A stretch of 64,000 nt of DNA, taken from contig QPMI01000005.1 in the NCBI GenBank assembly GCA_004431415.1, positions 124,001 through 188,000 of the forward strand, in the 5' to 3' direction. Below the pieces are notes generated by a model. The model was not told the origin of the DNA, did no database searches, and was given only the letters and a program-made list of their open reading frames with translations. The translations under genes and the position numbers were made by a program. The DNA comes from Cyanophora paradoxa CCMP329 (lineage: Eukaryota > Plantae > Glaucophyta). This document shows, in pieces, positions 22,647 to 42,354 of this stretch (position 1 is the stretch's first letter; each line of letters opens with the position of its first letter).

Positions 22647-24039
22647 TCAGCGGCGGGCAGCCTCGTCGCAGGCCTCGAGCAGCATGTCGACGCTGACCCT
22701 GCGGAACCGCGCCTCGGCGTAGTACGGGATCGCCTTTACCGCGAAGACGTCACGCAGTTCATCCGGAATCTCCGCAGCTGGAGGGACGGTCAACTCATTC
22801 CGAAGTTCGGTTGGCAGGGCGGCCTGGGGCGGGGGCGCACGGGCGGGGAAGCGGCAGGACTTGTCGTCGTGGAGGAGGAGGATGTCCTTCCCCGCCCGCG
22901 CCGCGTGCCGCACCTCGCCCAGCACGTACTGCCTCGCCAGCACGTCTGCGCAGGGCCCCGGGAGATCAGACGCCACCAGGCACGAGAACAGCCGATCGGA
23001 CCCTGGGAGATGATGAGGACAACGATCGCGGAGGCGTCGATGATCTCCTTGATCCTGCGGGGCGGGGGGGGGGCGGCTCGGGCGAGGTGCGGTGAGTGCT
23101 CCAACTCGAGAGGGGCGCACTGGTGGAGCTCGAGGTGGGAGTCGTCGACGTCGAGGAAGACGCGGAGGCCGGGGCGGGCCTGCTCGAGCTGGAGCTTGAG
23201 GGCGAGGGCGAGGTGGCCGGCGGGGGCCTGCTAGTGCGAGAGGAAGACGTCGTACTGGGCCGCTGCGGTGGGGCGTGAGGGGAGGGCGGGACCGGCTGCT
23301 CCGGAGCGGTGCACGGACCGAGGGCCGGGGCGGCAGGGCGCGGGGCGGCGGGGGCGGGCTGCGGCGGGGGGTGAGGGGCGGGGCGCGCGGGCGAGGCGGC
23401 GGGGCGCACCGCGGCGGCGGGGGCGGGGAGGGAGCGGAGGTAGGGCACGACGGCGGCGCACTGGGCTTTCGCGGAAGCGATAGCGGCATCGTGTGAGCTG
23501 TACGGTCCTTTTTGGTCGTTGACGGCGCGGCGGACGGGCTCGGGCCACGAGTCCACGACGGGGTTGTTGTGCACATACAGCTTCTCCAGGGCGGCGAGGC
23601 GGCCGATCTCGGACGGCAGCGCCGTGAGCTGGTTGCCGCCCACATTCAGCCACTGCAGGGCGGCGAGGCGGCCGATCTCCGGCGGCAGCGCCGTCAGCTG
23701 GTTGTTCCACACGTACAGCTCCTCCAGGGCGGCGAGGCGGCCGATCTCCGGCGGCAGCGCCGCCAGCTGGTTGTTCCACACGTACAGCTCCTCCAGGGCG
23801 GCGAGGCGGCCGATCTCCGTCGGCAGCGCCGCCAGCTGGTTGCTGCTCACGTACAGCCTCTGCAGGTTCGTCAGCTTGGCAAGCTCGGCCCCCGGGATGC
23901 TTGTGAGCTTGTTCCCGTCGAGGTCGAGCACGCGGATGTTCGCCGGCCCCGCCGCCGCGATCTCCGCCGCCGGCCACTCCGTCCGCCCCTCCTTCTTCAG
24001 GTCCAGCTTCCCCTCCGCCGGTATCCACCCCCTGCCCAT
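22647..24039 (-). pseudogene. LRR-TIR copy 1 (6 LRR, TIR subtype A) with an in-frame TAG early in the TIR
   Basis: MGRGW..GKLDL cap, 23-aa LRRs, NPVVDSWPE..VPYLRSL cap, then YDVFLSH*QAPAGHLALALKLQLE..LRVFLDVDD..VLGEVRHA. The stop is at 23231-23233. Confidence 0.8.
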
Positions 24040-24464
24040 GCCTGCGGGGCGGTCAGCGGCAGAAGCGCGCCGAGGGGAGCGCGCCCCCGCCCCGCCCGGC
24101 GGGTCCCCAGCCATGCGCATGCCTGGAGGAGCGCACCGTCGAATGATCGCCTTGCCGCAGCAATGCCGATCGAGCTGCTGGCGGCTCGCCCGCTGCTCTG
24201 TGCAGGGAGCTGCGCGCCGGTACAAGCAAGCAGTACTAGTGAGCGAACGACAGGCGAGCGATGCCAGAAACACGTCGGCTTCGCACCTGCCGCGATGAAT
24301 TCGATTCACAGTAGCGACAGGGTATGGCCGCCGCCAGTCCCAGGTGGCCTTGTCGTCCTTCTTGGCAGGGTCGTGTGTCCTGTAGAAGTTATCGTGCTCT
24401 TCCGCCGTGAAGTCACGGAAGTCCGTCATTTCGCGCCGCGGGCGGCGCGGCGGCGGCGGCGGGG

Positions 24465-24595
24465 GGGGTTCTACCCTGCAGGGGTACCCAGGGTTGCCCG
24501 ACGACCCTGCCACCCTGCAGGGTTCCACCCTCAGGGTGCCAGGGTGCAGGGTAAAACGCGCAGGGGACAGGGTAAAGGGTGGAACACTATCCAGG
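24465..24595. repeat. Cluster of CAGGG/CCCTG direct and inverted repeats, possible transposon terminus
   Basis: accctgcaggg occurs twice plus several caggg units. The segment is absent from the homologous upstream region of copy 5. Confidence 0.35.
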
Positions 24596-25579
24596 CCGCG
24601 CCGCGCCGGGGTACAGTCGCGCCGTGGCCGCTGCTGCTTCCATGGCGCTGAGGGGCGGGCCTGTCAGCTGCATGTCCATTGCTGTACATATCCACTCCAA
24701 GCACTTCTCTCCTTCTGTACTCCGGCCAGAGCTGTCAAGCTGGCCGGATCGAAATCCAGCGTGCTAGCGCGCGATCGGGACACAATTGCAAGCGCGGCGC
24801 AGCCCGCAGCCGAGACAATGGCGAAGCATAGCGCCGGCCGCGCGCGGGTGGCGGGTCGATCCGCTCCTCCGCGAGCGCTCCGCGCACGGGCGCGCGCCTG
24901 CTCCGCCCCGCTGGCGGCCCCGCCCGGGGCTTGGCCATGGCTCGGGGGCCTTGCGCCGGCCGCGGCCCCACGCGCGCCGCGCTGCGCGTCCCGCCGCTGC
25001 AGCAGACCCGCAGCAGCAGCCGCCGCCGCCGACGCCCTCGGCGCCGCCACGCCCCCTCGGAAGCCTCGCCCCCGTGCACCCGCAGGCCCCGCGGGCCGGG
25101 CGCCGGCCCCCTTTCGAATTCGTGCGGGTCGGGCACCCTCGCGGCCGGCCCTTCGGACCCCCCGCCTTCCCCCCCGAGGCTCAAGGTAAGGCGGGCCGGC
25201 GCCCGCCCTCCGCTTCTTCTAGGAATCTGATCCCGGGTTCTTGGGCTTCTCCTCAGGTTTACTCGGATTGGGCCTGGTCCCGGGCCGCACCCTCGGGTCC
25301 AGCCGGCGCCCGACGCCGCAGCGCCCCCGGCACGCAGCCCGCCGCCTCCCCCTCCGGGCCCCGTGGAGAGAGGGCGCCCGCCCTGTGCCCCCCAGATCCC
25401 TCTCCTTCGCGGGCCCAGGGCCCGCCTAGCCCCCTTCCCCCGGACCTCGCGGTGGGCCCCCTCCCCCCGTACCCCTCCGTATCCAAACCCCGCTTACCCC
25501 CCCTGGCCTCGCCCCCGCGCCCAACGCCCCGCGGACCCTGAGCGTGCAGGTCGTGCGCTCCGCCTTCCGAAGTTCCCCG

Positions 25580-26240
25580 GCCCCGCCCCCGGCCCTGAGG
25601 CTCCTCCGGGGTGCGAGCGGCCTGCCGGCCCTCCCCGCGCCCCCCGCCCGACAGGACGCTCCCCCTCCCCGCCCTTTCAGTTCTGGTCCGGTACCCCCCG
25701 GGCCACCCGCCCCCCGCCCGCCCCTCCGCCGCCGCCGCCTGAGCCGCCTGGCCTCGAGCCCGCCGCCCAAGGCCGTCTGAGCCGTCTGAGCCCCGCCCCC
25801 GGCCCTGAGGCTCCTCCGGGGTGCGAGCGGCCTGCCTTCTTCCCCTCGGCGCCGGATCGCCGACAGCGCCTGCCCTCCTCTCCAGGTGCGCGCACTTGAG
25901 CGTAGGCGACAGAGCACGGGGGGGCGCCACGCCGCTGCTTCCTGGACGGGAGTCCCGCCCGGCGCCCCCGCCACACCGACCGCCGCGCCGCGGCGCCGGC
26001 GCTCCCCGGCCCAACCCGGCCGGCCGCCTCCCTCCCGGAGGGCCCCCCGCCCGCCCCTCCCCACGCCCTTCACCCTACAGGACGCTCTCCTTTCCCGCCC
26101 CTTCAGCTCTGGTCCGGTACCCGCGGGCCGCCCGCCCCCCGCCCGCCCCTCCGCCGCCGCCGCCGTCTGAGTAGCCCGGCCTCGAGACCGCCGATGAAGG
26201 CCGTCTGAGCCGTCCGAGCCGTACGCGTCTGAGCCCGCTC
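25580..26240. repeat. GC-rich local repeats
   Basis: ccccgcccccggccctgaggctcctccggggtgcgagcggcctgcc at 25581 and 25791. caggacgctc..ctggtccggtacc at ~25652 and ~26078. ccgtctgagccgtc at ~25773, ~26201 and ~38660. Confidence 0.75.
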
Positions 26241-26549
26241 CGCCCCGCGCCTCTGCCCTCCCACCCCAGCAGCAGGCAGCCGCCCGGCCCCGGCCCGCCC
26301 GGGCGCCCGCGGCCCCGCCCGCCCCTCCCGCGCCTCCCGCCCGGCCCTTCCTTCCCCTTCGAGTTTCCCCCCCCCCCCTCCCGTGTCCCCAGTCGCCCCC
26401 CCCCCCCCCCCCCCCCCCGTGGCCTCCGCCCGCCCGCCCTCCTCCAGGGCGCCGGGGCGCGCCGCGGTCGCCCCCTCCTGGAGCTCCGGGGCGCCGGGGC
26501 GCGTCGCCCGCCCTCTGCAGCTGCAGCTGCCTCTATGTTAGCTATAGCC

Positions 26550-27250
26550 TTATGTTAGCTATGTTGGCTCAGGTGTTCGCTTATGTTAGCTATAGGTGTA
26601 CCGCTCACAAGACAGACTTTCCGAGGCGGACTGAATTCGCGGAAGGCGGGGGGGGGGGGGGGGGGAAGATGGGGGAAGGGGGAGGGGAGGGGAGGCCTCC
26701 GTGCACGTGTACGAGCTGTGCATGGGCAAGCGAGGATGCGCCGGTCAGATGCTGGGCCGATGCTGCAGACGCGCATGCGCACCTTCAGCCGTTCGCTGCA
26801 CGTGCGGGGCCCTGCGCGGTCGGCGTGCGTGCGTAAGCGACTCGGCGAGCTGCGATCACGAGCGCCGCCCCGCGCGAGCTCGAACGAGTGCCGGGCCGGG
26901 CGCCTACCTCGACGATCCTTAGAAAGCCGGTCGCGTGATTCTAGGAGAGCGTAGTTCTAGAAAGCTTACGAAGCCGTCTCCAAGAAGCTAGGGGAGGCGC
27001 GGAGGGCCGGGGGCGCCAACCTCACTCGAAGACCCTCTTCCTCTGTGTGGGCCCCCCGGTCGCCCCGTCGGCCTCCTTCTCCTCCTCCTCCTTCTCCTGC
27101 GCTGCGTCAGCCCTCATTGCGGGCGCCGCGCCGCGGGCGGCGCCGGGCTGCCGCACCCGTTCCCGCTTCGAATTCGCTGAGCCGCCACCCGAGCTCGAGG
27201 CACCCTCGTCCTGCGGCCGGTTGAGAGGCGCGGCTGAGAGTCTGAGATTC
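26550..27250. repeat. Diverged segmental duplicate of ~39290-40020; its start also matches 22455-22500
   Basis: Shared gctcaggtgttcgcttatgttagct..gtaccgctcacaagacagactttccgaggcgg, gcatgggcaagcgaggatgcgccg and a (CCT)n tract. Confidence 0.8.
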
Positions 27251-27476
27251 ATGGCCCAGAAGAGCACAAGCATGATCTACAATTATAAAACGCTTCCGCG
27301 GGGCGAGGGGGGGGGGGGGAGGGGGGGGGGATTGCGAGGGCGCGAGCGGGGAGGCGCGGCTCACTGATCGCGAAGCGCCAGCGAGGCTGTGCTCGCGCAG
27401 CTGAGGAGGGGCGGCTCGGCTCAGATCTGAGCAGGGGGGAGGGGGGGGGGAGGTGGGAAGGGAGGAGGGGAGGAGG

Positions 27477-29587
27477 TCAGGCGTCGGCGCGAACCGCTGC
27501 GGCGCACTGCTCGAGCAGCGCTTCGATGCTGGCGGCCTTGCGCTTGTTCTGCAGGGGGTACAGGATGGCCGCGCGCGCGAGCGCCGGCCTCAGGTCCTCT
27601 GGTACCTCCCCCGCTGGAGGAACGGTCGTCTGCATGTCAGGGGGGTACAGGCAGGGGCCGTACCGGCGGGGAAGGGGCAGGAGGCCTCGTCGTGGAGGAG
27701 GACGATGTTCTTGCCCGCCCCAATCGCGTGCCGGACCTCGCTCAGCACGCTCGAGCTCTTCAGAACATCTGCGCGACGCAAGCGAGTCAGACATGGACAC
27801 GAGACCGCGCGTGCGAGACAGGGCAGCGAGGGGGCTGGCATGGGCGGCCGGACCCTTCGAGACGATGAGCACGACGCTCGCGGAGGCGTCGATGATCTCA
27901 TGGATCCTGCGGGACGGAGGACGAGACTTGGGGTCAGCGCGGATCGTTCCCGGAGCCTGGGCGGGGCCGGGGACCAGAGGGCGCACCGGTGCAGCTCGGG
28001 GCGGGGGCCGCCGGCATCGAGGAAGACGCGGAGGCCGGGGCGGGTCTGCTCCAGGTGCACCTTGAGGGCGCGGGCGAGCGGTCCCGCCGTGTCGCGCTCG
28101 TGCGAGAGGAACACGTCGTACTGGAACGACGCCGCCGGGAACACTGCGGCGCGGAGTGAGCGCTCGTGCGCGAGAAATGGAGCGAAGGCGGTGCACGGAC
28201 CGGAGGCAGGCACGGCGGGGCGCGGGGGGGCGGCATGGGGCGGCGGGGGCGACGGTTCGGGGGCGGCGGCAGCGGGCTGCGACGCGAAGCGGTGAGGGGC
28301 GGGGCGCGAAGCGGAGAGCTCCGCGGAGGGGCGCACCGCGGCGGAGGGGGCGGTGAGGGAGCGGAGGTAGGGCACGACGGCGGCGCACTGGGCTCCGCCA
28401 TCGTCACGGTTGGCGTTGACGGCGCGGCGGACGGACTTGGGCCACGAGTCCACGACGGGGTTGTGATCGACGTAAAGCGTTTGAAGGGCGGGGAGGCGGC
28501 CGACCTCCGGCGGCAGCGCCGTCAGCCGGTTGCTGTTCGCCCACAGCGTGTGCAGGGCCTCGAGGCATCCGATCTCGGGCGGCAGCGCCGTCAGCCGGTT
28601 GTAGCCCACGCCCAGCGCCTGCAGCGCGGCGAGGCAGCCGATCTCCGGAGGCAGCGCCGTCAGCCGGTTATTCGTCAACCCCAGCCCCGTCAGGTTCGTG
28701 AGCTTGGCGAGCTCAGCCCCCGGAATGCTCGTGAGCTCGTTGTTGCCGAGGTCGAGCACGCGGATGTTCTCGGGCCCCAGCCGCGCGATCTCCGCCGTCG
28801 GCCATTCCGTTCGCCCCTCCGCCCCCAGGTCAAGCCTCCCCTCCCACGGGAACCACCCGTCTATGTCTGCGGGGCGGTCAGCGTCACTGGGTCACTAGCG
28901 CCTGTTGCGTCGGGAGTCAGGAACGCAGGGGCGGGATGTGCACGGACCGAGGGTCGGCGCCGGCGGAGCTGATGGTGCGGCAGCGACGGGCTGCGGAGGG
29001 AGGTGAGGAGCGACCAAGCACCGACCAAGGGAAGGGGCGCGGGGGCGGCGCAGCGGGCGCACCGCGGCGGCGGGGGCGGTGAGGGAGCGAAGGTAGGGCA
29101 TGACGGCGGCGCACTGGGCCCCGCCATCGTCACGGTTGGCGTGGACTGCGAGGCGGACGGGCTCGGGCCACGAGTCCACGACTGGGTTGTTGTGCACGGA
29201 CAGCGTGACCAGGGCATCGAGGCGGCCGATCTCCAGCGGCAGCGCCGCCAGCCCGTTGTTGTCCACAAACAGCGTATGCAGGGCCTTGAGGCAGCCGATC
29301 TCGGGTGGAAGGGCCGTCAGCCGGTTGTGGCCCACGCCAAGCGCCTGCAGCGCGGTGAGGCGGCCGATCTCCGGCGGCAGCGTCGTCAGCCGAGTATACG
29401 TCAATCCCAGCGCCTCCAGTTTTGTCAGCTTGGCGAGCTCGGCGCCCGGGATGCTCCTCAGTTTGTTGTTGCCGAGGTCGAGCACGCGGATGTTCTCCGG
29501 CCCCACCCGCGCGATCGCCGCTGCCGGCCACTCCGTCCACCCCTCCGCCTCTAGGTCCAGCTTCCCTTGCTCCGGGTCCCACCTCAT
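27477..29587 (-). CDS. LRR-TIR copy 2: two LRR modules (5+5 repeats) plus TIR subtype B
   Basis: Module A 29587-28948, intron 28947-28867, module B 28866-28201. TIR exons start at 28143: YDVFLSHERDTAGPLARALKVHLE..VLSEVRHAIGAGKNIV..PEDL..ASIEALL. Junctions are in frame. Confidence 0.88.
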
Positions 29588-30879
29588 GGCCTGGGGGGAG
29601 CCGCAGGGCGTAGCGTGACGCAGGAAGCCGCTGAGCGCGCCCGCCGACAGCCGCCAGCGTCCGTCAGCTGCAACGGAGCCGGTCACGCGGTCTCCGCTGG
29701 CTGCTCGCGCTGTGCTGAACTGCAGCGAACTCGCTGCGAACGAAGCACTGGGGTACAGTCGCAGCGCCCGGCGCAGCGCCAGCAAGCCAGAGTTGAATAG
29801 CGTCCGGCAAGCACTCGGACCGTGTCGGACGATCATTTGGATCGCTACAGGGTGCGTGGTGCGGCTTGTCAAGTTGCTCTCCGTAGCCTCCATCTCTTGA
29901 CCGCGAGCCGCCGACCCGCCAGGCCGCAACCGATCGGCCCGCGCGGCGCGCATATTGCATGCCGCGGCAGGACGCCTTCTCCCATTGCGCCAGCCCGCTC
30001 GTAATTCCGATCCGCTCATTCAGATGCAACGCCAGCCGCCCAGCCGCTCATTCAATCCGATCTGATCTGTCCGAGCCGCCTGGCCCGAGCACCTCTCGGG
30101 CGGCCACGTCTCGTTGCGGCGCTGCCAAGTCTTCTCCGAGGCTCGCTCACGGCCGCGCCTCACGCGCCTCACGGCCGCCGCGGGGTGCGTTTGGAGCGCT
30201 TCTGATGCGGTTCGGTCGGCGGCAGGGCGTGCCCTTTGTCAGCCGGAGCGGACTCTTCCATTCTCTCGCCCTCGGGCGCGTTCGGTCCAGCGGAACGGGC
30301 TCCATGCGACCCCGCACGATCGGAGCGGACTCTCGATCTCATCTTTCCTGCATTAGGGTGCGCTTCGGGCCCGCGCCGCCCACCTTGGGCCGCCCCGCGT
30401 CCTTATCTCGCCCTCAGGCCTGGCCGAACAGTTTTTTCGCTGTACCCCTCCACCACGGCGGCGCCGAGCCCCGAAGGGCGCACCGATGGAATCTCCTTGT
30501 CATTCCCGATCGAACGGTGTGCGGCACGTCGTGGCGGTGCGTTCTAAGTACCTGTACCCCCATATCCCTCCGGACCCGACCTTCGCCCCAGGACCCCGTT
30601 GGACTTTTGTCCGCCCCTCTCGAGCACGGCGAATCGAATGGTGCGCACCACGCCGGCCGTATCCACATGCCCGAAGCGCTAGAGCCGCCCCGACCCCTTG
30701 ATCTTGCCAGTGATTGGGTACCCGGACGCTCGACCCCTTGATCAGGTACCCGGGCGCTTCTGGGGCCGATCCCGCGGGCAAAAGGCTGTTCTCACGCCTC
30801 GGGCGACCTCAGAGACCTTGTAGGACCGCAGAGGGGTCGGCGACGGTGCTGGCGGCCCTGCGCTCAGTCCAAGGTCGAG
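29285..30879. repeat. Near-identical direct segmental duplication, copy 1 (copy 2 at ~36975-38570)
   Basis: Sequence matches at an offset of 7690-7691 bp, and the ORF translations are identical in the track. Confidence 0.95.
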
Positions 30880-31004
30880 AGTACGCACGGTGCTGCGGGC
30901 CGCCGCCGGGCCGGGCGGGCGCCCCGATGCCAGCCGCCCCGCTTGCTCGCCCCCCCGCGGCCGATTGCTTGCTCGCTCCCCCTCGGCCCGGGCCGGGGGA
31001 GCGA

Positions 31005-31400
31005 GCAATCGATATCGGCACGGCGCAGGCGTGCGCAATTGATATATACATCGCTTGTAAGTATATCAATTTGTACGTATACGGCGGTGATCATGAGCTC
31101 GAGGGTGGCGATGTGCATACATATGGAAGGTCCTAGGTTTGGAGCAATCGATATCGATATCGATATCGATATCGCGATCGCGATCGATATCGGCTGCGCA
31201 TATCGGGCGCGCATGCGCATGCGGCCGCGGGCCGGCGCCGCCCGGCGCGCGGCCGCGCGCGCGCGGCCGGCGCTGCCGCGGGCTCCGGCGCCGGCCGCAG
31301 TGCATACGCACTGCAGCTGCCGAATTCGAATGCACGTACAGCTGCGCGTCTAAAGCTCTCCAGATCCTACTAGCTATAGGCAGCAAGATCTAGGTAGATC
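31005..31400. repeat. Palindrome-rich low-complexity tract including (ATCGAT)n
   Basis: atcgatatcgatatcgatatcgatatcgcgatcgcgatcgatatcg, gcgcatgcgcatgc, tctaggtagatctaga. Confidence 0.8.
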
Positions 31401-31866
31401 TAGACCGGTACCAGTCTGACCAAGTTTAGACCAACGAGCTGGGGGGTACCGTTGCAACCGGTGCCCATCGAAGTGCAGCTGCAGCTGACTCAGGCCGTTC
31501 ATCGAAGCTGCAACGCGTTCCGCAGCAGCGGATGCGAAGCCGCAACGCGTTCCGCAACAGCGTTTCCAAGCACCGGGCGAGCAGCCAGCGACACGTCCGA
31601 GCGGGCGGGGGCGAGCACGAGAACTTCTGACCAGTCGCTTCGAAAGTTTGTTTTGCTGCCGACCAATTGCAAGGGAATCCGTCGAAGGTGCGCGACTCGG
31701 GACGGCGCATAGCATACGAGGCTAGAAACTACGCTTCGCTTTCGGTCGGACGGTGTGCCGAGAAGCGTTAATTGCCGCTTCGAAATCCCACCAAGCCACG
31801 CGGTGGGCAGGCGGAGCGGGGGCGCGCTCCCCGCAGCGCGCCTCTGCCGCTGACCGCCCCGCAGGC

Positions 31867-34800
31867 ATGGGCTGTGGGTGGGAACCGAAGGAGGGGAAGC
31901 TGGACTTGAAGGGAGAGCTGCGAACGGAATGGCCGGCGGCGGAGATCGCGCGGGTTGGGCCTGAGAACATCTTTGTGCTCGACCTCAGCAAGAACAGGCT
32001 GACGGGCATCCCGGGCGCCGAGCTCGCCAAGCTGACAAACCTGGAGAGGCTGTTTTTGAGCGGTAATTTGCTGACGGCGCTGCCGTTGGAGATCGGCCGC
32101 CTCGCCGCCCTGTCGTGGCTGGACGTGAGCAACAACCAGCTGACGGCACTGCCTCCGGAGATCGGCTGCCTCGCCACCCTGCATCAGCTGGTAGCGAGCC
32201 GCAACCATCTGATGTCGCTGCCGTCGGAGACAGGCGCCCTCGCCGCCCTGGAGGTGCTGAACGTGAGCCACAACCGGCTGACGTCGCTGCCGCCGGAGAT
32301 CGGCCGCCTCGACGCCCTTCAGTCGCTGGGCGTGACCGACAACCAGCTTACGTCCCTGCCGCCGGAGATCGGCCGCCTCGCCGCCCTGCGGTTGCTATAC
32401 GCTCACGGCAACCCCGTCGTGGACTCCTGGCCCGAGCCCGTCCGCTGCGCCGTCAACGATAATTCCGACGTCAGCTGCCGCGATGCCTCTGCCGTTTCCG
32501 GGAAAGCCCAGCTCGCTGCCGTCGTGCCCTACCTCCGCTCCCTCCTCGCCCCCGAGGCCGCGGTGCGCCCCGCCGCGCCGCCCCCGTGCCCCACCTCTCA
32601 CCCGCCGTCGCAGCCGGCGACTGACGCCCCGCACGCCCCAAGCCCTCCCGCGCCGACCTCAGGTCCGTGCAACGCTGCCCGGGCCGCCCCAATCGGGACC
32701 TCACCCGTGCGCGACCGAATCGCGCAGGCGAGCCCTCGCGCGGGACGTGGAACCAGAGGAACGGGAAGTTGGACCTGCAGAAGACGGGGCAGACGAACTG
32801 GCCCTCGGGGAGAATCGCGCGGTTCGGCTCCAAGAACATACAGGAGCTCGACCTCGGAGGGAACAAGCTCGCGCGCATCCCGGGGGCGGAGCTCGCCAAG
32901 CTGACGAACCTGAAGAAGCTGTGGTTGAGCGGCAACCAGCTGACGTCGCTGCCGTCGGAGATCGGCGCCCTCGCCGCCCTGCAGGAGCTGCACGTGGAGG
33001 GCAATCAGCTCACGGCTCTGCCGCCGGAGATCGGCCTGCTTTGCCTGCAGAAACTGGATGCGAGCAACAACCAGCTGACGGCGCTGCCGCCGGATATCAA
33101 CCGCCTCTTCGCCCTGCAGCAGCTGAACGCAAGCAGGAACCAGTTAACGACGCTGCCTTCGGAGATCGGCCACCTCGCCGTCCTGCGGGGGCTGGACGTT
33201 AGCGGCAACCAGCTGACGGCGCTGCCATCGGAGATCGGCCGCCTCGATGCCCTGGTGACGCTGTCCGTGCACAACAACCCCGTTGTGGACTCGTGGCCCG
33301 AGCTCATCCGCCGCGCCGTCAACGACAATGAGGGTGACGGTCAAGCCCAGCTCGCCGCCGTCGTGCCCTACCTCCGCTCCCTCCCCGCCCCCACCGCCGC
33401 GGTGAGCCCCGCCGCGCCGTCCCTGCGCCCCACTCCTCACCCGCCGTTGCAGCCCGCCACCAACGCCCCGCACGCCCCAATCCCTCCCGCGCCGGCCTCC
33501 GGTCCGTGCACATCAAAACGACCCAGTTATAACCTCGCCTGAGCTTTACGCCGCCCTGCAGGCACGGACAGGAGGTGGAAAGCGGAGCAGGGGATACTTT
33601 ACCTGCGGAGAGAGGGGCGGACGGAGTGGCCGGCGGTGGAGATCGCGCGGGCGGGGCCCGAGAACATACGCGAGCTCGACCTCGGAGGAAACAAGCTCAC
33701 GCGCATCCCAGGGGCGGAGCTCGCAAAGCTCACGAACCTGGAGAAGCTGGAGTTAAGCGGCAACCAGCTGACATCGCTGCCGCCGGAGATCGGCCACCTT
33801 GCCGCCCTGAAGTTTCTGAACGTGACCAACAACCAGCTGGCGGCGCTGCCGCCGGAGATCGCCCGCCTCGCCACCCTACAGACGCTGAACTTGAGTTGGA
33901 ACAAGTTGACGGCGTTGCCGCCGGAGATCGGCCACCTCGCCGCCTTGCGGAAGCTGGATTCCACGTTCAACCAGCTGACAACGCTGCCGCCGGAGATCGG
34001 TCTCCTCGCCGCCCTGGAGGAGCTGCAGTTGCGGTGCAATAAGCTGACGTCGCTGCCGCCGGAGATCGGCCGCCTTGCCGCCCTGAAGTCTCTGTACGTG
34101 GATGGCAACCAGCTGGCGGTGGTGCCGCCGGAGATTGGCCGCCTTCCCGCCCTGCAGTGCCTGTTAGTGCACAGCAACCCCGTCGTGGACTTGAGCACGA
34201 GCTCGTGGCCGGACTCTATCCGTAACTTCGTCAGCTTAGATTGTAACAGCAATTCCTACGATGACCAGACCGCCTACGATTCCGGGAAAGTCCAATGCGC
34301 CGCTGTCGTGCCCTACCTCCGCTCCCTCCTCGCCCCTGAGGCCGCGGTGAGCCCCCCCCCCCACCCCCCCACCCTCCCCCCCCGAGCCCCCCCCCCCCCC
34401 CCCCCCCCGAGCCCCCGCCCCGCGCCCCCCCCCCCCCCCCACCCCCTGACCCGCTGCCGCAGCCCGCCGCCCGCGCCGCCGAACCTCCTCCGCCCCTGCC
34501 GCCCCATGCCGCCCTGCGCCCTGCCGCGCCTGCCTCTGGTCCGTGCACTGCTTCCGGTCCGTGCACTGCTTCAGCTCCAGCCTCCGCACGCGAGCTCTAA
34601 CGCCGCGCCGCAGTGTTCCCGGCGGCCTCGGCGCCGGCCAAGTTCGACGTGTTCCTCTCCCACGAGCGCGACACGGCGGGCCCCCTCGCCCGCGCCCTCA
34701 CGGTGCACCTGGAACAGGCCCGCCCCGGCCTCCGCGTCTTCCTCGATGCCGGCGAGCCCCGCCCCGAGCTGCACCGGTGCGCCCTCTGGTCCCCGGCCCC

Positions 34801-35324
34801 GCCCAGGCTCCGGGAAGGATCCGCGCTGACCCCAAGTCTCGTCCTCCGTCCCGCAGGATCCATGAGATCATCGACGCCTCCGCGAGCGTCGTGCTCATCA
34901 TCTCGAAGGGTCCGGCCGCCCAGCTCCCCTCGCTGCCCTGTCTCGCACGCGCGGTCTCGTGCCCATGTCTGACCCGCCTGCGTCGCGCAGATGTTCTGAA
35001 GAGCTCGAGCGTGCTGGGCGAGGTTCGGCACGCAATTGGGGCGGGCAAGAACATCGTCCTCCTCCACGACGAGGCCTCCTGCCCCTTCCCCGCCGGTACG
35101 GCCCCTGCCTGTACCCCCCTGACATGCAGCCGACCGTTCCTCCAGCGGCGGAGATCCCGGAGGACCTGAAGCCGGCGCTCTCTCGCGCGGCTATCCCGTA
35201 CCCCCTGCAGAACAAGCGCAAGGCGGCCAGCATCGAAGCGCTGCTCGAGCAGTGCGCCGCAGCGGTTCGCGCCGACGCCGTACCCCCTTTCATCCCCCCT
35301 CCCCCCCGAGAGGCTCAGATCTGA
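31867..35324 (+). CDS. LRR-TIR copy 3: three LRR modules (7+7+8 repeats) plus TIR subtype B
   Basis: Modules 31867-32662, 32728-33501 and 33562-34538, each with an internal linker intron (e.g. 34347-34462). TIR starts at 34614: FDVFLSH..VLGEVRHA. All junctions are in frame. Confidence 0.88.
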
Positions 35325-36500
35325 GCCGCCGCCTCTCCGGCGCCTCGCGACCGGTCAGCTGCGCCTCTTCGCCCGCGTCCTCTCGTCCCACCCATTCATA
35401 TTCATCATGCGGTGGGTGCGCAGGGCCAGCTGCCGGCCGGCCGGCCGGGGCAGGAGGAGGGCGCCTCGTGATCGGGCGGCGGGGCGGAGCTCTGGGAAGG
35501 AAAAGGCCCAGACAAGGACCGTCGAGGTGGGCCCTCGCGATCGAGCTCGTGCCGGGCGGCGCGATCCCCCTCAGGCCTGAGCGGGGCGGGCGCCGCAGGG
35601 CTTCGCCCAGGACGGGGTCCGGATGCTCTAGAAGAAGGTGTGCGCGCGCCTGTACCCCCGTCTCAACTCCAGCTCGCATGAACGCCCTCCGGATCCTCAG
35701 GTCATCGTCGATTCGGAGAGGTCCTGCACGATCGCTGTACCCCAGGGGCGGCCTTCGAAACGCCGTACCCCGCGGGCAGCTGCCGGTGGCGGGGGGCATG
35801 GGGGACTACCGCTGGCTCCGGGGCGAGATCGAGCAGGCCGTGGGGCGAGGCAGGGCGGCCCTGGGCGGCTTCAGCATGGAGGGTGCCCGGCTCCGGACTC
35901 CCGTGCCCCTCGCCCCCGCCCGCGCCTGACACGGCGCCTCAGCTGCAGGCAAGAGCTTCGGCGAGACGAGGAGGGCCGCGAGGGCGCCCCCGGCGACGGC
36001 GACCCCGATCATTGTTAGCACTATAGCTATAGCTAGCCGCGTCTGCATCGCTCCTGTCCCAGCGGGCGTGGGTCCCCTCGTCGCAGACCTCGAGCAGCAG
36101 CCAGGAAAAACAAACTTTGTGGAAACAAGTACCAACTCGAGTCAACAAGTGAACATTCTGATGCTAGCTATAGTAGCGGCCAGGGCAGGACTGGGAGCCC
36201 GGGGGGCCGGGCCGGGCCGGGGGAGAGGGAGGGGGGAAGGCGCCCGAGGCCTCCTCGAGGACAAAGAGAGGGGGGCGAGAGGGGCGGGGGAGGGGAGAGG
36301 GGAGGAAGGGCCCCTCCAGGGCCAGGGGAGGCGGGGGCGCTGACGGCAGGCGAGAGGAAGCGAGCGACCGCCTCGGACGACGGGGGCGAGGCGGGAGGCC
36401 GAGCGGAGGCGGGCGGAGGCGGGGCGGAGGCGCGGGACGGCCCGGGGCCGACGGGGACGAGGCGAGAGGCGGGCGGGGCCCTCAGCGGCGGGCGGGGCCC

Positions 36501-37277
36501 TCAGCGGCGGGCGCCCTCGTCGCAGGCCTCGAGCAGCATCTCGACGCTGACCTTGCGGAACCGCGCCTCGGCGTAGTACGGGATCGCCTTGCGCGCGAAC
36601 ACGAGCCGCAGGTCCTCCGGGATCTCCGCAGCTGTGGGGCGATCAAATTCCGAAGTTCGGTTGGCTGGTGGTTCTGGGGCGGGGGCGCACGGGCGGGGAA
36701 GCGGCAGGACTTCTCGTCGTGGAGGAGAACGACGTTCTTCCCCGCCCGCGCCGCGTGCCGCACCTCGCCCAGCACGTACTGGCTCGCCACGACGTCGACG
36801 TCCCCCTCGAGGGGCGGGCCGGGTCGTGTACATGTGTGTTTATCAGATATCACAATAGCGCTCGGCTAGCTTACAATAGCGTTGTGCACGGACAGCGTCA
36901 CCAGGGCATCGAGGCGGCCGTCTCCGACGGCAGCGCCGTCAGCTGGTTGTTGCCCACCCACAGCTCCTGCAGGGCCTTGAGGCAGCCGATCTCGGGTGGA
37001 AGCGCCGTCAGGCGGTTGTGGCCAACGCCCAGCGCCTGCAGCGCGGTGAGGCGGCCGATCTCCGGCGGCAGCGTCGTCATCGAGTAAACGTCAATCCCAG
37101 CGCCTCCAGTTTTGTCAGCTTGGCGAGCTCGGCGCCCGGGATGCTCCTCAGTTTGTTGTTGCCGAGGTCGAGCACGCGGATGTTCTCCGGCCCCACCCGC
37201 GCGATCGCCGCTGCCGGCCACTCCGTCCACCCCTCCGCCTCTAGGTCCAGCTTCCCTTGCTCCGGGTCCCACCTCAT
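36501..37277 (-). pseudogene. LRR-TIR copy 4: chimeric, deleted and frameshifted
   Basis: The 5' part duplicates module A of copy 2 with 1-bp deletions (~37080, ~36920). It is joined through AT-rich filler (36830-36880) to the C-terminal half of a subtype A TIR (QYVLGEVRHAARAGK..IPYYAEARFR). Confidence 0.85.
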
Positions 37278-38570
37278 GGCCTGGGGGGAGCCGCAGGGCG
37301 TAGCGTGACGCAGGAAGCCGCTGAGCGCGCCCGCCGACAGCCGCCAGCGTCCGTCAGCTGCAACGGAGCCGGTCACGCGGTCTCCGCTGGCTGCTCGCGC
37401 TGTGCTGAACTGCAGCGAACTCGCTGCGAACGAAGCACTGGGGTACAGTCGCAGCGCCCGGCGCAGCGCCAGCAAGCCAGAGTTGAATAGCGTCCGGCAA
37501 GCACTCGGACCGTGTCGGACGATCATTTGGATCGCTACAGGGTGCGTGGTGCGGCTTGTCAAGTTGCTCTCCGTAGCCTCCATCTCTTGACCGCGAGCCG
37601 CCGACCCGCCAGGCCGCAACCGATCGGCCCGCGCGGCGCGCATATTGCATGCCGCGGCAGGACGCCTTCTCCCATTGCGCCAGCCCGCTCGTAATTCCGA
37701 TCCGCTCATTCAGATGCAACGCCAGCCGCCCAGCCGCTCATTCAATCCGATCTGATCTGTCCGAGCCGCCTGGCCCCGAGCACCTCTCGGGCGGCCACGT
37801 CTCGTTGCGGCGCTGCCAAGTCTTCTCCGAGGCTCGCTCACGGCCGCGCCTCACGCGCCTCACGGCCGCCGCGGGGTGCGTTTGGAGCGCTTCTGATGCG
37901 GTTCGGTCGGCGGCAGGGCGTGCCCTTTGTCAGCCGGAGCGGACTCTTCCATTCTCTCGCCCTCGGGCGCGTTCGGTCCAGCGGAACGGGCTCCATGCGA
38001 CCCCGCACGATCGGAGCGGACTCTCGATCTCATCTTTCCTGCATTAGGGTGCGCTTCGGGCCCGCGCCGCCCACCTTGGGCCGCCCCGCGTCCTTATCTC
38101 GCCCTCAGGCCTGGCCGAACAGTTTTTTCGCTGTACCCCTCCACCACGGCGGCGCCGAGCCCCGAAGGGCGCACCGATGGAATCTCCTTGTCATTCCCGA
38201 TCGAACGGTGTGCGGCACGTCGTGGCGGTGCGTTCTAAGTACCTGTACCCCCATATCCCTCCGGACCCGACCTTCGCCCCAGGACCCCGTTGGACTTTTG
38301 TCCGCCCCTCTCGAGCACGGCGAATCGAATGGTGCGCACCACGCCGGCCGTATCCACATGCCCGAAGCGCTAGAGCCGCCCCGACCCCTTGATCTTGCCA
38401 GTGATTGGGTACCCGGACGCTCGACCCCTTGATCAGGTACCCGGGCGCTTCTGGGGCCGATCCCGCGGGCAAAAGGCTGTTCTCACGCCTCGGGCGACCT
38501 CAGAGACCTTGTAGGACCGCAGAGGGGTCGGCGACGGTGCTGGCGGCCCTGCGCTCAGTCCAAGGTCGAG
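36975..38570. repeat. Segmental duplication, copy 2 of 29285-30879
   Basis: Direct sequence match. Confidence 0.95.
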
Positions 38571-39157
38571 TCCAAGCGAAGTCCAAGCCTGGCAGGGTTC
38601 CGCCCTCGAGTACCCCTCTCGGGCCGGCCGCCCCTCTGCCTCCGCCGGGTCGCCTGAGTCCGTCTGAGCCGTCCGAGCCGTCTGAGGCCGCCCCGCCCCG
38701 GGCCTCTGCCCTCCCCGTGCTATCCCTGCACCCCGCCATCCCATTCCCGCCCTTCGTTCGGCCGCTCACCGTAGTACCCATCTCTCCCCTCTCTGCCCCT
38801 TGTCTTCTACTCCACCCCCCCACCCCCCCCCCCCCCCCCCCCCCCCAGAGCCGTCCTCTGGAGCCGCCGGCCCCACGCTCTAGCTCCCCGGCGCGGCCTC
38901 CCGGCCTCCGAGCCTCGGCGATCAATCTTCGCGGCTCCTTCAATCGTCCGCGGCGCGGGGCCCGCTCGGGCTCGGGCCCCCGCCCGCCGGCGCTCCCCTC
39001 CCTCCCCCCCGCCCTCCGCCGGTCGCGAGGCGCGCCGCGGGTTGCAGCGGCGCTGCGAGGACCCGAGGACTCGGAGCCGAGCGGCTGAGCAGGGGGCCGC
39101 CTTCCTCCCCCCAGCTCCCAGCCTGCCGGCCGTCCTGACCATCGTCGCGGACGCACA

Positions 39158-39236
39158 CTGGACGCCGCGGGACGACTACCTCATCTCCGTCGGCGGCGCC
39201 GACCTCTGCGTCATGCAGTGGCGCCGCGAGAAGTAG
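39158..39236 (+). pseudogene. Orphan duplicate of the terminal exon end of the calpain-EML gene
   Basis: WTPRDDYLISVGGADLCVMQWRREK* is identical to 22327-22405 and is followed by similar 3' flank. Confidence 0.92.
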
Positions 39237-39916
39237 CTATAGGCGGCCGCTATGTTTGTTCGGAGCTCGTATCTCTTATCTAGAAGGTTCATGTTAGCTC
39301 AGGTGTTCGCTTATGTTAGCTCTAGGTGTACCGCTCACAAGACAGACTTTCCGAGGCGGACTGCATTTGCAAAGGCGGGGGGGAGGGGGGGCGCAGGAGG
39401 AAGAAGGTGGGGGGGGGGGGGGGGGGGGGCTGCGTTCGCGAGGGCGGGCGCCCGGGCTGCAGATGTGGGGAAAGGGAGGGGAAGGGGAAGGGGGGAAGGG
39501 GTGGAGTGGGGGCGGGCGGGGGGGGCCGCGGGCGGGAAATCGCGGCTCGCGCCGGGGCCCTCCGTGAACGAGCTGCGCATGGGCAAGCGAGGATGCGCCG
39601 ATCAGTGAACGAGGCTCGGCCGAGGCTGCAGCCGCGCATGCGCACCGTGGCATCTTCAGCCGGTCGCAGCTGTGCGATCCGCTCCCCGACTCGCTCCGAG
39701 GCTCAGCTCTTCGGTTAGTCCTCTAGCCCTTTGCGTGCGGGGCCCTGCGCGGCCGGTGTGCGTGCGTGAGCGACTCGGCGGGCTGCGATCGCGAGCGTCG
39801 CCCCGCGCGGGCTCGACCGAGTGCCCACCTCGACGACCCTCTTCTTTTGTGTGGGCCCCTCCTTCGCGCCGTCGGCCTCCTTTTCCTCCTCCTCCTCCTC
39901 CTCCTCCTGCGCTGCG

Positions 39917-41718
39917 TCAGCACTTTTTAGGAGCGCCGCGCGGCGTGGTGCGGCGCCAGGCGGCCGCACCCGTTCCCGCTTGGCTGCGCCGCCCGAGTTC
40001 GAGGCGCCCTCGTCCTGTGCCGGGCGCCCCTCCTCGCGGAGCTGAGGGGCGGCTTGGCTCTGAGCTTCTCGGGGGGAAGGGGGGTACGGCGTCGGTGCGA
40101 ACCGCTGCGGCGCACTCCTCCAGCAGCGCTTCGATGCTGGCCGCCTTGCGCTTGTTCGCCACGGGGTACAAGATAACCCTGCGCGCGAGCGCCGGCCTCA
40201 TGTCCTCGGGTACCTCATCCGCTGGAGTGGAGGAACGGTCAGCTGCATGTCGAGGGGTACAGGGACGTGCACGTACCGGCGGGGAAGGGGCAGGAGACCT
40301 CGTCGTGGAGGAGCACGACGCTCTTGCCCGCCCCGATCGCGTGCCGGACCTCGCCCAGCACGCTCGAGCTCTTCAGGACGTCTGCGCGACGCAAACAAGC
40401 AAGTCAGACCGAAGCATTATACAGGGCAGCGAGGGGGCTGGCATGGGCGGCCGGACCCTTCGAGATGATGAGCACGACGCTCGCGGAGGCGTCGATCATC
40501 TCCTTGATCCTGCGGGGCGGGAGACGAGACTTGGGGTCAGCGCGGATCCTTCCCGGAGCCTGGGCGGGGGACCAGAGGGCGCACCGGTGCAGCTCGGGGC
40601 GGGGCTCGTCGGCCTCGAGGAAGACGCGGAGGCCGGGGCGGGCCTGTTCCAGGTGCACCTTGAGGGCGCGGGCGAGGGGGCCCGCCGTGTCGCGCTCGTG
40701 CGAGAGGAATACATCGTACTGGGACGACGCCGCCGGGATCGCTGCGGAGGGGCGTGAGCGCTCGCGTGCGGAGGCTGGAGCGGAGGCGGTGCAAGGACCA
40801 GAGGCAGGCGCGGCAGGGCTTGCAGCGGGCGGTGAGGCGGGGCCGGGCTGCGGTAGCGGCGAGTGAGGGGCGCGATGCAGCGCGGCGTGGCGGTGTGGCG
40901 GGGCGTACCTCGGCAGCGGCGTTGGGGAGGGAGCGGAGGTAGGGCACGATGGCGGCGCACTGGGCTTGACCGCCAAACATGCTGGTGTTGTTGTTGACGG
41001 CGCGGCGGACGGGCTCGGGCCACGAGTCCACGACGGGGTTGTTGTGCACGGACAGCGTCGCCAGGGCATCGAGGTGGCCGATCTCCGGCGGCAGCGCCGT
41101 CAGCTTGTTGCCGCTCACGTCCAACCACTGCAGGGCGGCGAGGCGGCCGATCTCCGGCGGCAGCGCCGTCAGCTGGTTGTTGCTGACGTCCAGCGTCTGC
41201 AGGTTGGCGAGGCGGCCGATCTCCGGCGGCAGCGACTTCAGCTGGTTGCTGTTCACGTCCAGCCACTGCAGTGCGCCGAGACGACCGATCTCCGGCGGCA
41301 GCGCCGTCAGCCGGTTGTTTTTTGCGTTCAGCCAAAGCAGGGCTGCAAGGCGGCCGATCTCCGGGGGCAGCGCCGTCAGCTGATTGTTGCTCACGTACAG
41401 CCCCTGCAGGGCAGCGAGGCGGCCGATCTCCGGCGGCAGCGCCGTCAGCTTGTTATTGCTCAAGTCAAGCGACTGCAAAGCGGCGAGGCCGAAGAGCTCC
41501 GGTGGAAGCGCCGTCAGCTGGTTGCCATCCAAAAACAGCACCTCCAGGTTCGTCAGCTTGGCGAGCTCGGTCCCCGGGATGCTCGTGAGATCGTTTTGCC
41601 GGAGCTCGAGCCAGCGGATGTTCTCGGGCCCCGCCGCCGCGATCTCCGCCGCCGGCCACTCCGTCCGCCCCTCCCCCCCCAGCTCCAGCACACCCCTCTC
41701 TATCCACCCCCTGCCCAT
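39917..41718 (-). CDS. LRR-TIR copy 5: one LRR module (9 repeats) plus TIR subtype B
   Basis: Exon 41718-40909 (810 nt), linker exon 40847-40799, then YDVFLSH..LKVHLE..VLGEVRHA..VPEDMRPAL..ASIEALL. C-terminal end uncertain. Confidence 0.87.
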
Positions 41719-42354
41719 GCCTGCGGGGCAGTCAGCGGCAGAAGCGCGCCGCGGCGGCGGGGAGCGCGCCCCCGCCCCGCCCGGCGGGTCCCCAGCAAGC
41801 GACGCCAGAGCGTGGGCCATGGGGGCCCGGCCGGCGCCCCGTCAACTCGTCTCGCATCTTCCAGGCTATCCAGGCTATGCACCCGCCCGGAGGAGCGCAC
41901 CTTCAACGGATCGCCTTGACGCAGCAGAGCCGAGCTTTCGGAAGCGACGGAGCTCGCCCGCTCAGAGATTCCTCTCCGGTCACGCGCTGCCTGCTGGCCG
42001 CTCTGCGCTCGCGCCGGTACAAGCAAGCAGCCTGGCAGTGAGCGAGCGACATGCGAGCGATGCCAGAAACCCGTCGGCTTCGCACCTCCCGCCAGCGCCC
42101 GCCAGCGCACTGTAACGGAGCTGGTCGCACGCTCTCCGCTGGCCGCTCGCGCGCAGAGCTGACCGAGCACACCTTAACCACCTGACGCGGCCGTGATCCT
42201 GCTGGACCATTGCTGCGAACGAAGCTCTCCGGGGTACGGTCGCACCGCCGCGGCTCGCCCACAGGCCGCGCCCAGCAGCGCTTAACCTAGCACCAGCGCT
42301 TAACAAAAGAGCCCGGCGATTTCAGCCAGGAGACGAACAGGGCGAGCGCTGCCG

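Follow-up and report, generated by a model that had tools for sequence, protein, structure and literature searches.

Immunity in bacteria, plants and animals is linked by catalytic TIR domains. The described systems closest to our subject are SARM1, with its ARM-SAM-SAM-TIR order; the plant TNL receptors, in which a TIR is followed by a domain that binds nucleotides (NB) and by leucine-rich repeats (LRRs); the Toll-like receptors (TLRs), in which LRRs precede a TIR in one chain; and soluble LRR-TIR proteins from bacterial and metagenomic data. SARM1 homologues have been reported from choanoflagellates (PMC6040629), and a survey of TIR domains found SARM1-group TIRs in metazoans only (PMC7075850). 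Plant-lineage TIR surveys left out glaucophytes, and the searchable literature yielded no report on glaucophyte TIR proteins or on Cyanophora LRR-TIR genes. Here, we analyze a 64,000-nt stretch of the genome of the glaucophyte alga Cyanophora paradoxa CCMP329 (contig QPMI01000005.1, positions 124,001 to 188,000; hereafter, the window), which holds a cluster of five loci coding for LRR modules followed by a TIR. We propose that these genes form a lineage-specific, tandemly duplicating family of soluble proteins, in which one to three capped LRR modules of SHOC2/Roco type, a disordered linker and a SARM1-type TIR would provide ligand-gated cleavage of nicotinamide adenine dinucleotide (NAD+); we put the probability of this reading at roughly 45%. 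An innate-immune-type receptor family, combining ligand sensing, NAD+ cleavage and a role in immunity, is a plausible interpretation of such sequences. The genes are already public as unnamed models; as judged from their sequences the family is real and coherent, with putative immune and NADase functions.

A six-frame motif scan places all five LRR-TIR loci (A to E) within approximately 19 kb. The original prediction, made from the letters of the window, had proposed an expanding cluster of five LRR-TIR loci at 22647-41718, and both borders prove exact: 22647 is the last stop-codon base of A, and 41718 is the ATG of E, at MGRGW. Its description of a protist system can be sharpened, as the host is a glaucophyte alga. 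At gaps of 50-90 nt with GT..AG borders, the reading frame changes within conserved protein motifs, and the loci are therefore intron-bearing eukaryotic genes. EukProt EP00741 gene models (tig00000042_g15426, g15427, g15428 and g15431) match the window exon by exon, with identity at or near 100%, and it is on these public models that the spliced-protein domain, PDB and fold analyses below were run. The loci are as follows:

22648-24429, minus strand: locus A, model g15426 (P0007), placed by tblastn mapping; probable pseudogene
27148-29587, minus strand: locus B, model g15427 (P0001, 590 aa), placed by mapping and RNA-like joints
31863-35270, plus strand: locus C, model g15428 (P0005), placed by mapping and RNA-like joints
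36485-37277, minus strand: locus D, a gene fragment
39718-41820, minus strand: locus E, model g15431 (P0002, 524 aa), placed by mapping, with an AlphaFold model

The models of A and E carry a single LRR module, that of B two and that of C three, always with the TIR at the C-terminus, in keeping with the predicted order of one to three modules and then a TIR. The SARM1-like motifs that had been listed are largely, but not uniformly, present. The motif scan finds DVFLSH at four sites (23251, 28117 and 40715 on the minus strand; 34646 on the plus strand) and [G/S]EVRHA five times, with the Glu codon at 22914-22916 in A, 27737-27739 in B, 35020-35022 in C, 36764-36766 in D and 40350-40352 in E; GKN[IV]V and PED[LM] are likewise found, while ASIE is restricted to B, C and E.

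That the domain is a TIR, and one of SARM1 type, is indicated by sequence, profile and predicted structure alike. At the Pfam cut-off of 28 bits, TIR_2 (PF13676) matches the proteins of B (31.0 bits), E (33.6 bits) and C (31.7 bits), with A below it at 22.4 bits. Single stop-free exon open reading frames (ORFs) gave no TIR match in Pfam (best TIR_2 E-value 0.2), because the domain is split over four exons. A phmmer search with residues 392-540 of P0001 against all PDB sequences returned, at E-values under 0.1, SARM1 and C. elegans TIR-1 and nothing else (best 1.3e-5, residues 10-125). A HMMER scan of 1.84 billion representatives gave 175 relatives at E<=0.001, and a profile of 47 relatives matched SARM1 across the whole domain at 3.7e-21, followed by AbTir (7.7e-6), TLR2 (about 5e-5) and plant TIRs (1e-4 to 2e-3); ThsB was absent from the matches of this profile. 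The AlphaFold model of the TIR has five strands with flanking helices, at a predicted local distance difference test (pLDDT) score of 90.6. A Foldseek search with this model gave 130 PDB matches at E<=0.001, and the 50 listed are all TIR structures: ranks 1-32 are SARM1 or TIR-1 (query-normalised template-modelling score 0.65-0.79, identity 22-28%), and after them, among the matches listed, come the plant TIRs of RUN1, SNC1, RPS4, RPP1 and RPV1 and those of MAL and AbTir. The domain thus both scores and folds as a TIR. The Glu of the EVRHA motif, which had been predicted to stand at the position of helix alpha-C required for NADase activity, does align with SARM1 E642 in HMMER ('VLSEVRHA' against 'WVHKEIVTA'), is kept in all five loci, and is the sole invariant column across the 47 relatives, whose mean column identity is 36%. 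We conclude that, by sequence and model, the window TIR is SARM1-type. The predicted parallel with SARM1 accordingly holds for the TIR, whose nearest solved relative is SARM1 by all three approaches; it does not extend to the SAM and ARM domains, to the SARM1-specific loop or to the residue at the W638 position, to which we return below.

Two types of TIR occur in the cluster. In type 1 (B, C and E) the TIR contains ASIE, and an acidic/basic tail is spliced on behind it, whereas type 2 (A, D and the paralogues P0003 and P0004) ends in '..EACDEGARR'. In a maximum-likelihood tree, both types and one TIR-only gene form a Cyanophora-only clade (Shimodaira-Hasegawa-like approximate likelihood-ratio support, SH-aLRT, 97-99), which sits among protist TIRs partnered with SAM, ankyrin, Roc-COR, ZZ and WD40-kinase domains. 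Nei-Gojobori ratios of nonsynonymous to synonymous change (dN/dS) over 132 TIR codons are 0.30 (B-C), 0.47 (B-E) and 0.53 (C-E), from small counts of 10-23 changes per class, which indicates moderate constraint on the TIR. The type-1 tail (27148-27400 and 39718-40056, both minus strand) is a conserved low-complexity segment, DEGAS.SGG..KRERE(E)nKEADGA..GPTQ(R/K)KRV, with one RNA-supported intron (27209/27364) and no Pfam match; its two basic clusters could form a bipartite nuclear-localisation signal.

The sensor half is built from a single kind of LRR module. Every LRR ORF matches LRR_8, LRR_4 and LRR_14 in Pfam, and each module has an N-cap, 'GKLDL..EGRTEWPAAEIA..GPENIR', and a C-cap, 'HNNPVVDSWPEPVRRAVN...AQCAAVVPYLRSL', with a Pro/Ala-rich linker and the TIR after the last module. 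In the AlphaFold model of full-length E, the N-cap, nine LRR strands and a three-helix C-cap are predicted at pLDDT >94, the Pro-rich linker is disordered, and the TIR is placed with low confidence (pLDDT 50-70; predicted template-modelling score 0.61). The repeat is of the 23-residue 'LxxLxVxxNQLTALPPEIGRLAA' type, nearest to Leptospira LIC proteins, SHOC2, RSU1 and the cytosolic LRRs of LRRC8, the last three being cytosolic eukaryotic types. Across 40 window repeats, positions 2, 3, 5, 7 and 8 have an entropy of 2.5-3.4 bits, and 12 of the 18 others have 1.4 bits or less; this is the usual concave-face pattern, unusually sharp here.

Beyond LRR and TIR_2, Pfam finds no NB-ARC, NACHT or other domain in the window's models and ORFs. 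A crude hydropathy check gives no transmembrane helix (the highest 19-residue value, 1.71, lies inside the beta-C strand of the TIR) and no hydrophobic N-terminus resembling a signal peptide. The proteins are thus neither TLRs nor nucleotide-binding LRR receptors, as had been proposed. Their starts are probably MG(C/R/K)GW, as in many paralogous models. MGCGW, MGRGW and MGKGW are the probable N-termini (ATG codons at 24039 in A, 31867 in C and 41718 in E), and the paralogues P0202 and P0240 begin MGGCRSK and MGGGSSR; these ends resemble sites of N-myristoylation and palmitoylation, and may tether the 'cytosolic' receptors to the inner face of a membrane.

To ask of read contigs how these exons are joined, one has to bear in mind that the types of the runs (RNA or DNA) are only guessed and that the contigs are short. 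At locus B, RNA-like contigs from three runs in two studies show CT..AC joints, which are GT..AG on the minus strand. They comprise one tail intron (27209/27364), three TIR introns (27613/27664, 27768/27854 and 27905/27986) and the two introns flanking the mini-exon between LRR modules 1 and 2 (28866/28948 and 28990/29063). Over these parts of B, the DNA-like run X14 follows the genome colinearly, with no splicing. A single stop-free frame (27593-28891) holds both LRR module 2 and TIR exon 1 of B, which are approximately 200 nt apart. This shared frame, together with the run of spliced exons on the same strand, makes a single LRR-TIR transcript at B nearly forced, to judge from the sequence. 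The expectation that LRR and TIR exons share a transcript is thus supported by one gene model, one frame and RNA-like-supported introns, albeit with the direct LRR-TIR joint unlisted. At locus C, intron 1 and the mini-exon are confirmed by the joints 31685/31863, 32561/32613 and 32659/32725. Upstream of MGCGW, the RNA-supported 5' exon of C (31458-31685) contains no ATG and is interrupted by an in-frame stop, and the first 72 residues of the P0005 model are therefore probably wrong. The exons of the four loci with a gene model are:

23395-24042, minus strand: LRR module of A, with a probable ATG at 24039
about 23120-23257, 23003-23056, 22827-22946 and 22650-22784, minus strand: type-2 TIR exons of A
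29063-29587, minus strand: LRR module 1 of B
28949-28990, minus strand: linker mini-exon of B
28322-28867, minus strand: LRR module 2 of B
about 28202-28285, minus strand: linker exon of B
27986-28150, 27854-27905, 27664-27768 and about 27489-27613, minus strand: TIR exons of B
about 27365-27400 and 27148-27209, minus strand: acidic/basic tail exons of B
31867 (ATG, MGCGW) to 32561, plus strand: start and LRR module 1 of C
32613-32659, plus strand: mini-exon of C
32725 to about 33443, plus strand: LRR module 2 of C
about 33558-34427, plus strand: LRR module 3 of C
about 34646-34774, 34858-34905, 34990-35094 and 35139-35270, plus strand: TIR exons of C; the model's 3' tail is uncertain
41718 (probable ATG, MGRGW) to about 40846, minus strand: start and single nine-LRR module of E
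40587-40715, 40461-40508, 40281-40382 and 40082-40222, minus strand: TIR exons of E
about 39970-40056 and 39718-39747, minus strand: tail exons of E

Between B and C lies a divergent neighbor of B (29850-31100, plus strand) with RNA-supported GT..AG introns at 29850/29922, 30356/30417 and 30535/30591 and no Pfam match. The public model g15428 joins its exons to locus C, and the RNA contigs do not support that join.

The cluster belongs to a wider family. With the first module as query, the capped LRR emerges as a Cyanophora cassette joined to different C-terminal ends, and the cap motifs were not found in the matches of this query outside Cyanophora. The window TIR types stand behind capped LRRs in further clusters on tig00000841, tig00000532 and tig00000600, and the LRR-TIR architecture occurs in at least 12 models over several contigs. 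The same cassette is fused to SAM-TIR (P0206 and P0240), to SAM alone, to RING (including g15459 on the same contig) and to EML-type WD40. A SAM-TIR paralogue matches the human SARM1 TIR at 5.6e-23, with the motifs TYRR, LQGGVFDSK and DWVRKE (DWVHKE in SARM1), and by its sequence amounts to the SARM1 effector half placed behind an LRR. A second capped-LRR group (P0169, P0170, P0178, P0197 and P0274, on tig00000841, 532 and 600) has a distinct TIR (TIR_2, 71 bits), which in the PDB best matches TLR15/TLR2 and bacterial TIRs and not SARM1; given this distinction, the LRR cassette has recruited TIR domains at least three times.

How might such a receptor work? In the mechanism that we propose, the variable concave face of the LRR would bind a protein or other ligand, and binding would cluster the TIR domains or lift a restraint on them. 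The assembled TIRs would then cleave NAD+, as do those of SARM1, plants and Thoeris, leading to its depletion or to signals of the ADP-ribose or cyclic ADP-ribose (cADPR) type, in a response to infection or stress that might end in cell death. Circumstantial support comes from two reports on other protists: cytosolic SARM1-like TIR genes, without LRRs, mark virus-resistant cells of the haptophyte Gephyrocapsa huxleyi (PMC12489294), and some protist TIRs make cADPR (bioRxiv 10.64898/2026.04.20.719644).

Several observations weigh against ligand-gated NAD+ cleavage by these proteins. At the W638-equivalent, which precedes the Glu by four positions, B, C and E all carry Ser, the family consensus has Phe, and Tyr occurs in A, in D and in the type-2 paralogues. 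An aromatic residue at this position, W638 in SARM1, W204 in AbTir and W96 in RUN1, is probably important in catalytic TIRs. The proteins lack the SARM1-specific loop that precedes the catalytic helix, with an 8-residue gap opposite 'CMQDHDCK' in both HMMER alignments; the BB-loop region is three residues shorter than in SARM1; and E has VFLE where other loci have VFLD. Pfam finds no SAM, NB-ARC or other oligomerisation domain in the window proteins, which leaves the route of activation unexplained. SHOC2-type LRRs also serve as ordinary signaling scaffolds. Among the joints listed, none crosses either of the two small introns in the linker from LRR2 to the TIR of B, and the guessed run types, the short contigs and the small dN/dS counts belong on the same side. 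Finally, only 4 of 29 protist TIRs selected for the Glu gave detectable product in E. coli (bioRxiv 10.64898/2026.04.20.719644), so that the conserved Glu is a weak predictor of activity.

The main rival reading is of a non-enzymatic scaffold or adaptor, in which the TIR is a homotypic interaction domain (as in MyD88, MAL and TLRs) and the LRR recruits cytosolic partners, not necessarily in immunity. We regard this as a real possibility, though on the unlikely side. The nearest relatives of the LRR are the SHOC2, RSU1 and LRRC8 scaffolds; Ser occupies the W638 site in the three intact genes; sister genes with RING, SAM or WD40 in place of the TIR recall modular signaling families; and most Glu-bearing protist TIRs in the same screen yielded no product (bioRxiv 10.64898/2026.04.20.719644). 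However, a mere adaptor is hard to reconcile with a Glu that alone is invariant at a mean column identity of 36%, among solved relatives an enzyme comes first by 15 orders of magnitude, and tandem expansion with decay is typical of defense genes.

That expansion and decay can be followed in some detail, and agree with the predicted birth-and-death evolution: a 98.8% duplicate, two decayed copies and a variable number of modules are all present. Only B, C and E, whose exons are open throughout and whose splice sites are canonical, look intact, and they are the candidates for function. Locus A has an in-frame TAG (23231-23233, minus strand) in TIR exon 1, directly after DVFLSH, where the paralogue P0003 has Lys; the public model splices around it, loses strand beta-A and retains only the 22.4 bits noted above, and A is a probable pseudogene. 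The LRR of D is a copy of LRR module 1 of B with two 1-nt deletions (36921 and 37080), and an abrupt junction near 36880 leads into the 3' half only of a type-2 TIR (36485-36865), TIR exons 1-2 being missing. The segment 36881-38570 is a 98.8%-identical duplicate of 29189-30879, covering the 5' part of an LRR-TIR gene (LRR module 1 of B) and the first exons of the divergent neighbor. Within these 1.69 kb, approximately 1.5 kb differ by one 1-nt indel, and about 20 differences are clustered in one LRR unit (36899-37087), a pattern that looks like recent duplication followed by a gene-conversion patch from another paralogue. Deletion 37080 and adjacent D-specific letters also appear in a contig of the independent DNA-like run X14, so this frameshift, at least, is no artefact of the present assembly. 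In the neighbor, all four runs compared have an extra C after 30083, where the duplicate copy has a C at 37774; either the window has a 1-nt assembly error there or contigs of the duplicate were aligned to it.

With two of five loci broken, dN/dS reaching 0.5 for pairs with E, and public models in conflict with RNA at the 5' end of C, one might hold that the cluster consists mostly of non-functional relics of a duplicating family, transcribed at a low level and without a present role. We consider this very doubtful: in B, C and E every exon is open, the splice sites are canonical and RNA-like contigs are spliced; the core motifs and the catalytic-position Glu are intact, and dN/dS stays under 1; and this architecture is retained by paralogues of at least three further clusters. 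Scarcely credible is a fusion produced by gene prediction, assembly or bacterial contamination, for although bacterial and metagenomic LRR-Roc-COR and LRR-TIR proteins are 40-50% identical in the LRR and the listed RNA joints leave the LRR2-TIR linker unspanned, GT-AG introns are spliced in RNA-like runs and unspliced in the DNA-like run, LRR2 and TIR exon 1 of B share a stop-free frame, the architecture recurs across those 12 or more models on several contigs, the TIR clade is a eukaryotic one, partnered with SAM, Ank and kinase domains, and the G+C content of the cluster matches that of the rest of the window (approximately 70%). Contamination and horizontal gene transfer were rejected on introns, RNA and composition.

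Other features of the window lie beside the cluster. Just upstream of A, an EML-like gene (16505-21340, plus strand) has a HELP motif and two EML beta-propellers, and between D and E a relic (38775-39233, plus strand) matches only the last 27 positions of the second EML propeller (E 1e-5); fusions of capped LRR and EML occur on other Cyanophora contigs (P0162 and P0225). A PAS-domain ORF (2266-3279, minus strand; PAS_4, E 4e-17) is probably part of a kinase gene.

Should the proposed reading be true, the LRR-TIRs would be the first candidate immune receptor family described in glaucophytes. The family bears on how SARM1-type TIRs spread, and on how danger was sensed for them before animals; in sister genes on other contigs, the LRR occupies the place of SARM1's ARM domain. 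Glaucophyte LRR-TIRs would also offer a simple natural test case for the gating of a TIR enzyme by nothing more than an LRR. A more far-reaching version, which we think decidedly unlikely though worth stating, is an immune-type system of Cyanophora's own, with one capped LRR cassette (duplicated by whole exons, diversified on its concave face and possibly lipid-anchored) set on interchangeable SARM1-type TIR, SAM-TIR, TLR-like TIR, RING, SAM and WD40 ends, the LRR-TIRs being ligand-activated NADases without an NB-ARC or SAM oligomeriser. On that version, SARM1-type NAD+ cleavage with a repeat sensor would be an ancient eukaryotic defense module at the base of Archaeplastida.

Set against the described systems, the window proteins come closest to SARM1 and TIR-1, the nearest solved relatives of their TIR by sequence, profile and predicted fold. 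They share DVF(L/I)S, LKVHL, VF(L/I)D, GKNIV, PED(L/M) and A(S/T)IE with SARM1, as well as a C-terminal TIR behind a repeat-type sensor and a Glu matching catalytic E642. Unlike SARM1, they have no ARM or SAM domains, and hence no octamer ring, with LRR modules replacing ARM; their TIRs, at 25-28% identity, lack the 8-residue loop, have a shorter BB loop and, in B, C and E, carry Ser at the W638 site; and they form a clustered family of several copies, where SARM1 is single-copy. With plant TNL and TIR-only proteins they have in common an LRR sensor and a catalytic-type TIR, tandem birth-and-death clusters, a hypervariable concave LRR face and a cytosolic location. However, their order is LRR-TIR and not TIR-NB-LRR, they lack the NB-ARC switch and oligomeriser, and plant TIRs are distant (profile E 1e-4 to 2e-3, against 4e-21 for SARM1). 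With TLRs they share LRRs and then a TIR in one chain, but not the signal peptide or transmembrane helix; their LRRs are self-capped, of SHOC2/Roco type, in place of LRRNT/LRRCT, and their TIR falls outside the TLR clade.

The same bare architecture, a 23-residue 'LPPEIG' LRR and then TIR_2, is found in bacterial and metagenomic soluble LRR-TIR and LRR-Roc-COR-TIR proteins (P0184, P0203, P0228 and P0224), and on this sequence evidence it is therefore not unique to Cyanophora. Those proteins likewise have no transmembrane helix or NB-ARC and share the C-terminal YLRxL of the LRR, but they lack the Cyanophora N- and C-cap motifs and introns, and are not among the relatives found for the window TIR. 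Nearest to that TIR outside Cyanophora are protist TIR_2 proteins (from metagenomes and Phalansterium solitarium), with 35-39% identity, E-values of 1e-14 to 5e-21 and the same Glu; unlike the window genes, they carry SAM, Ank, Roc-COR, ZZ or WD40-kinase partners, and an LRR is rare in this set, accompanying the TIR in 5 representatives out of 123, two of these five being Cyanophora's own.

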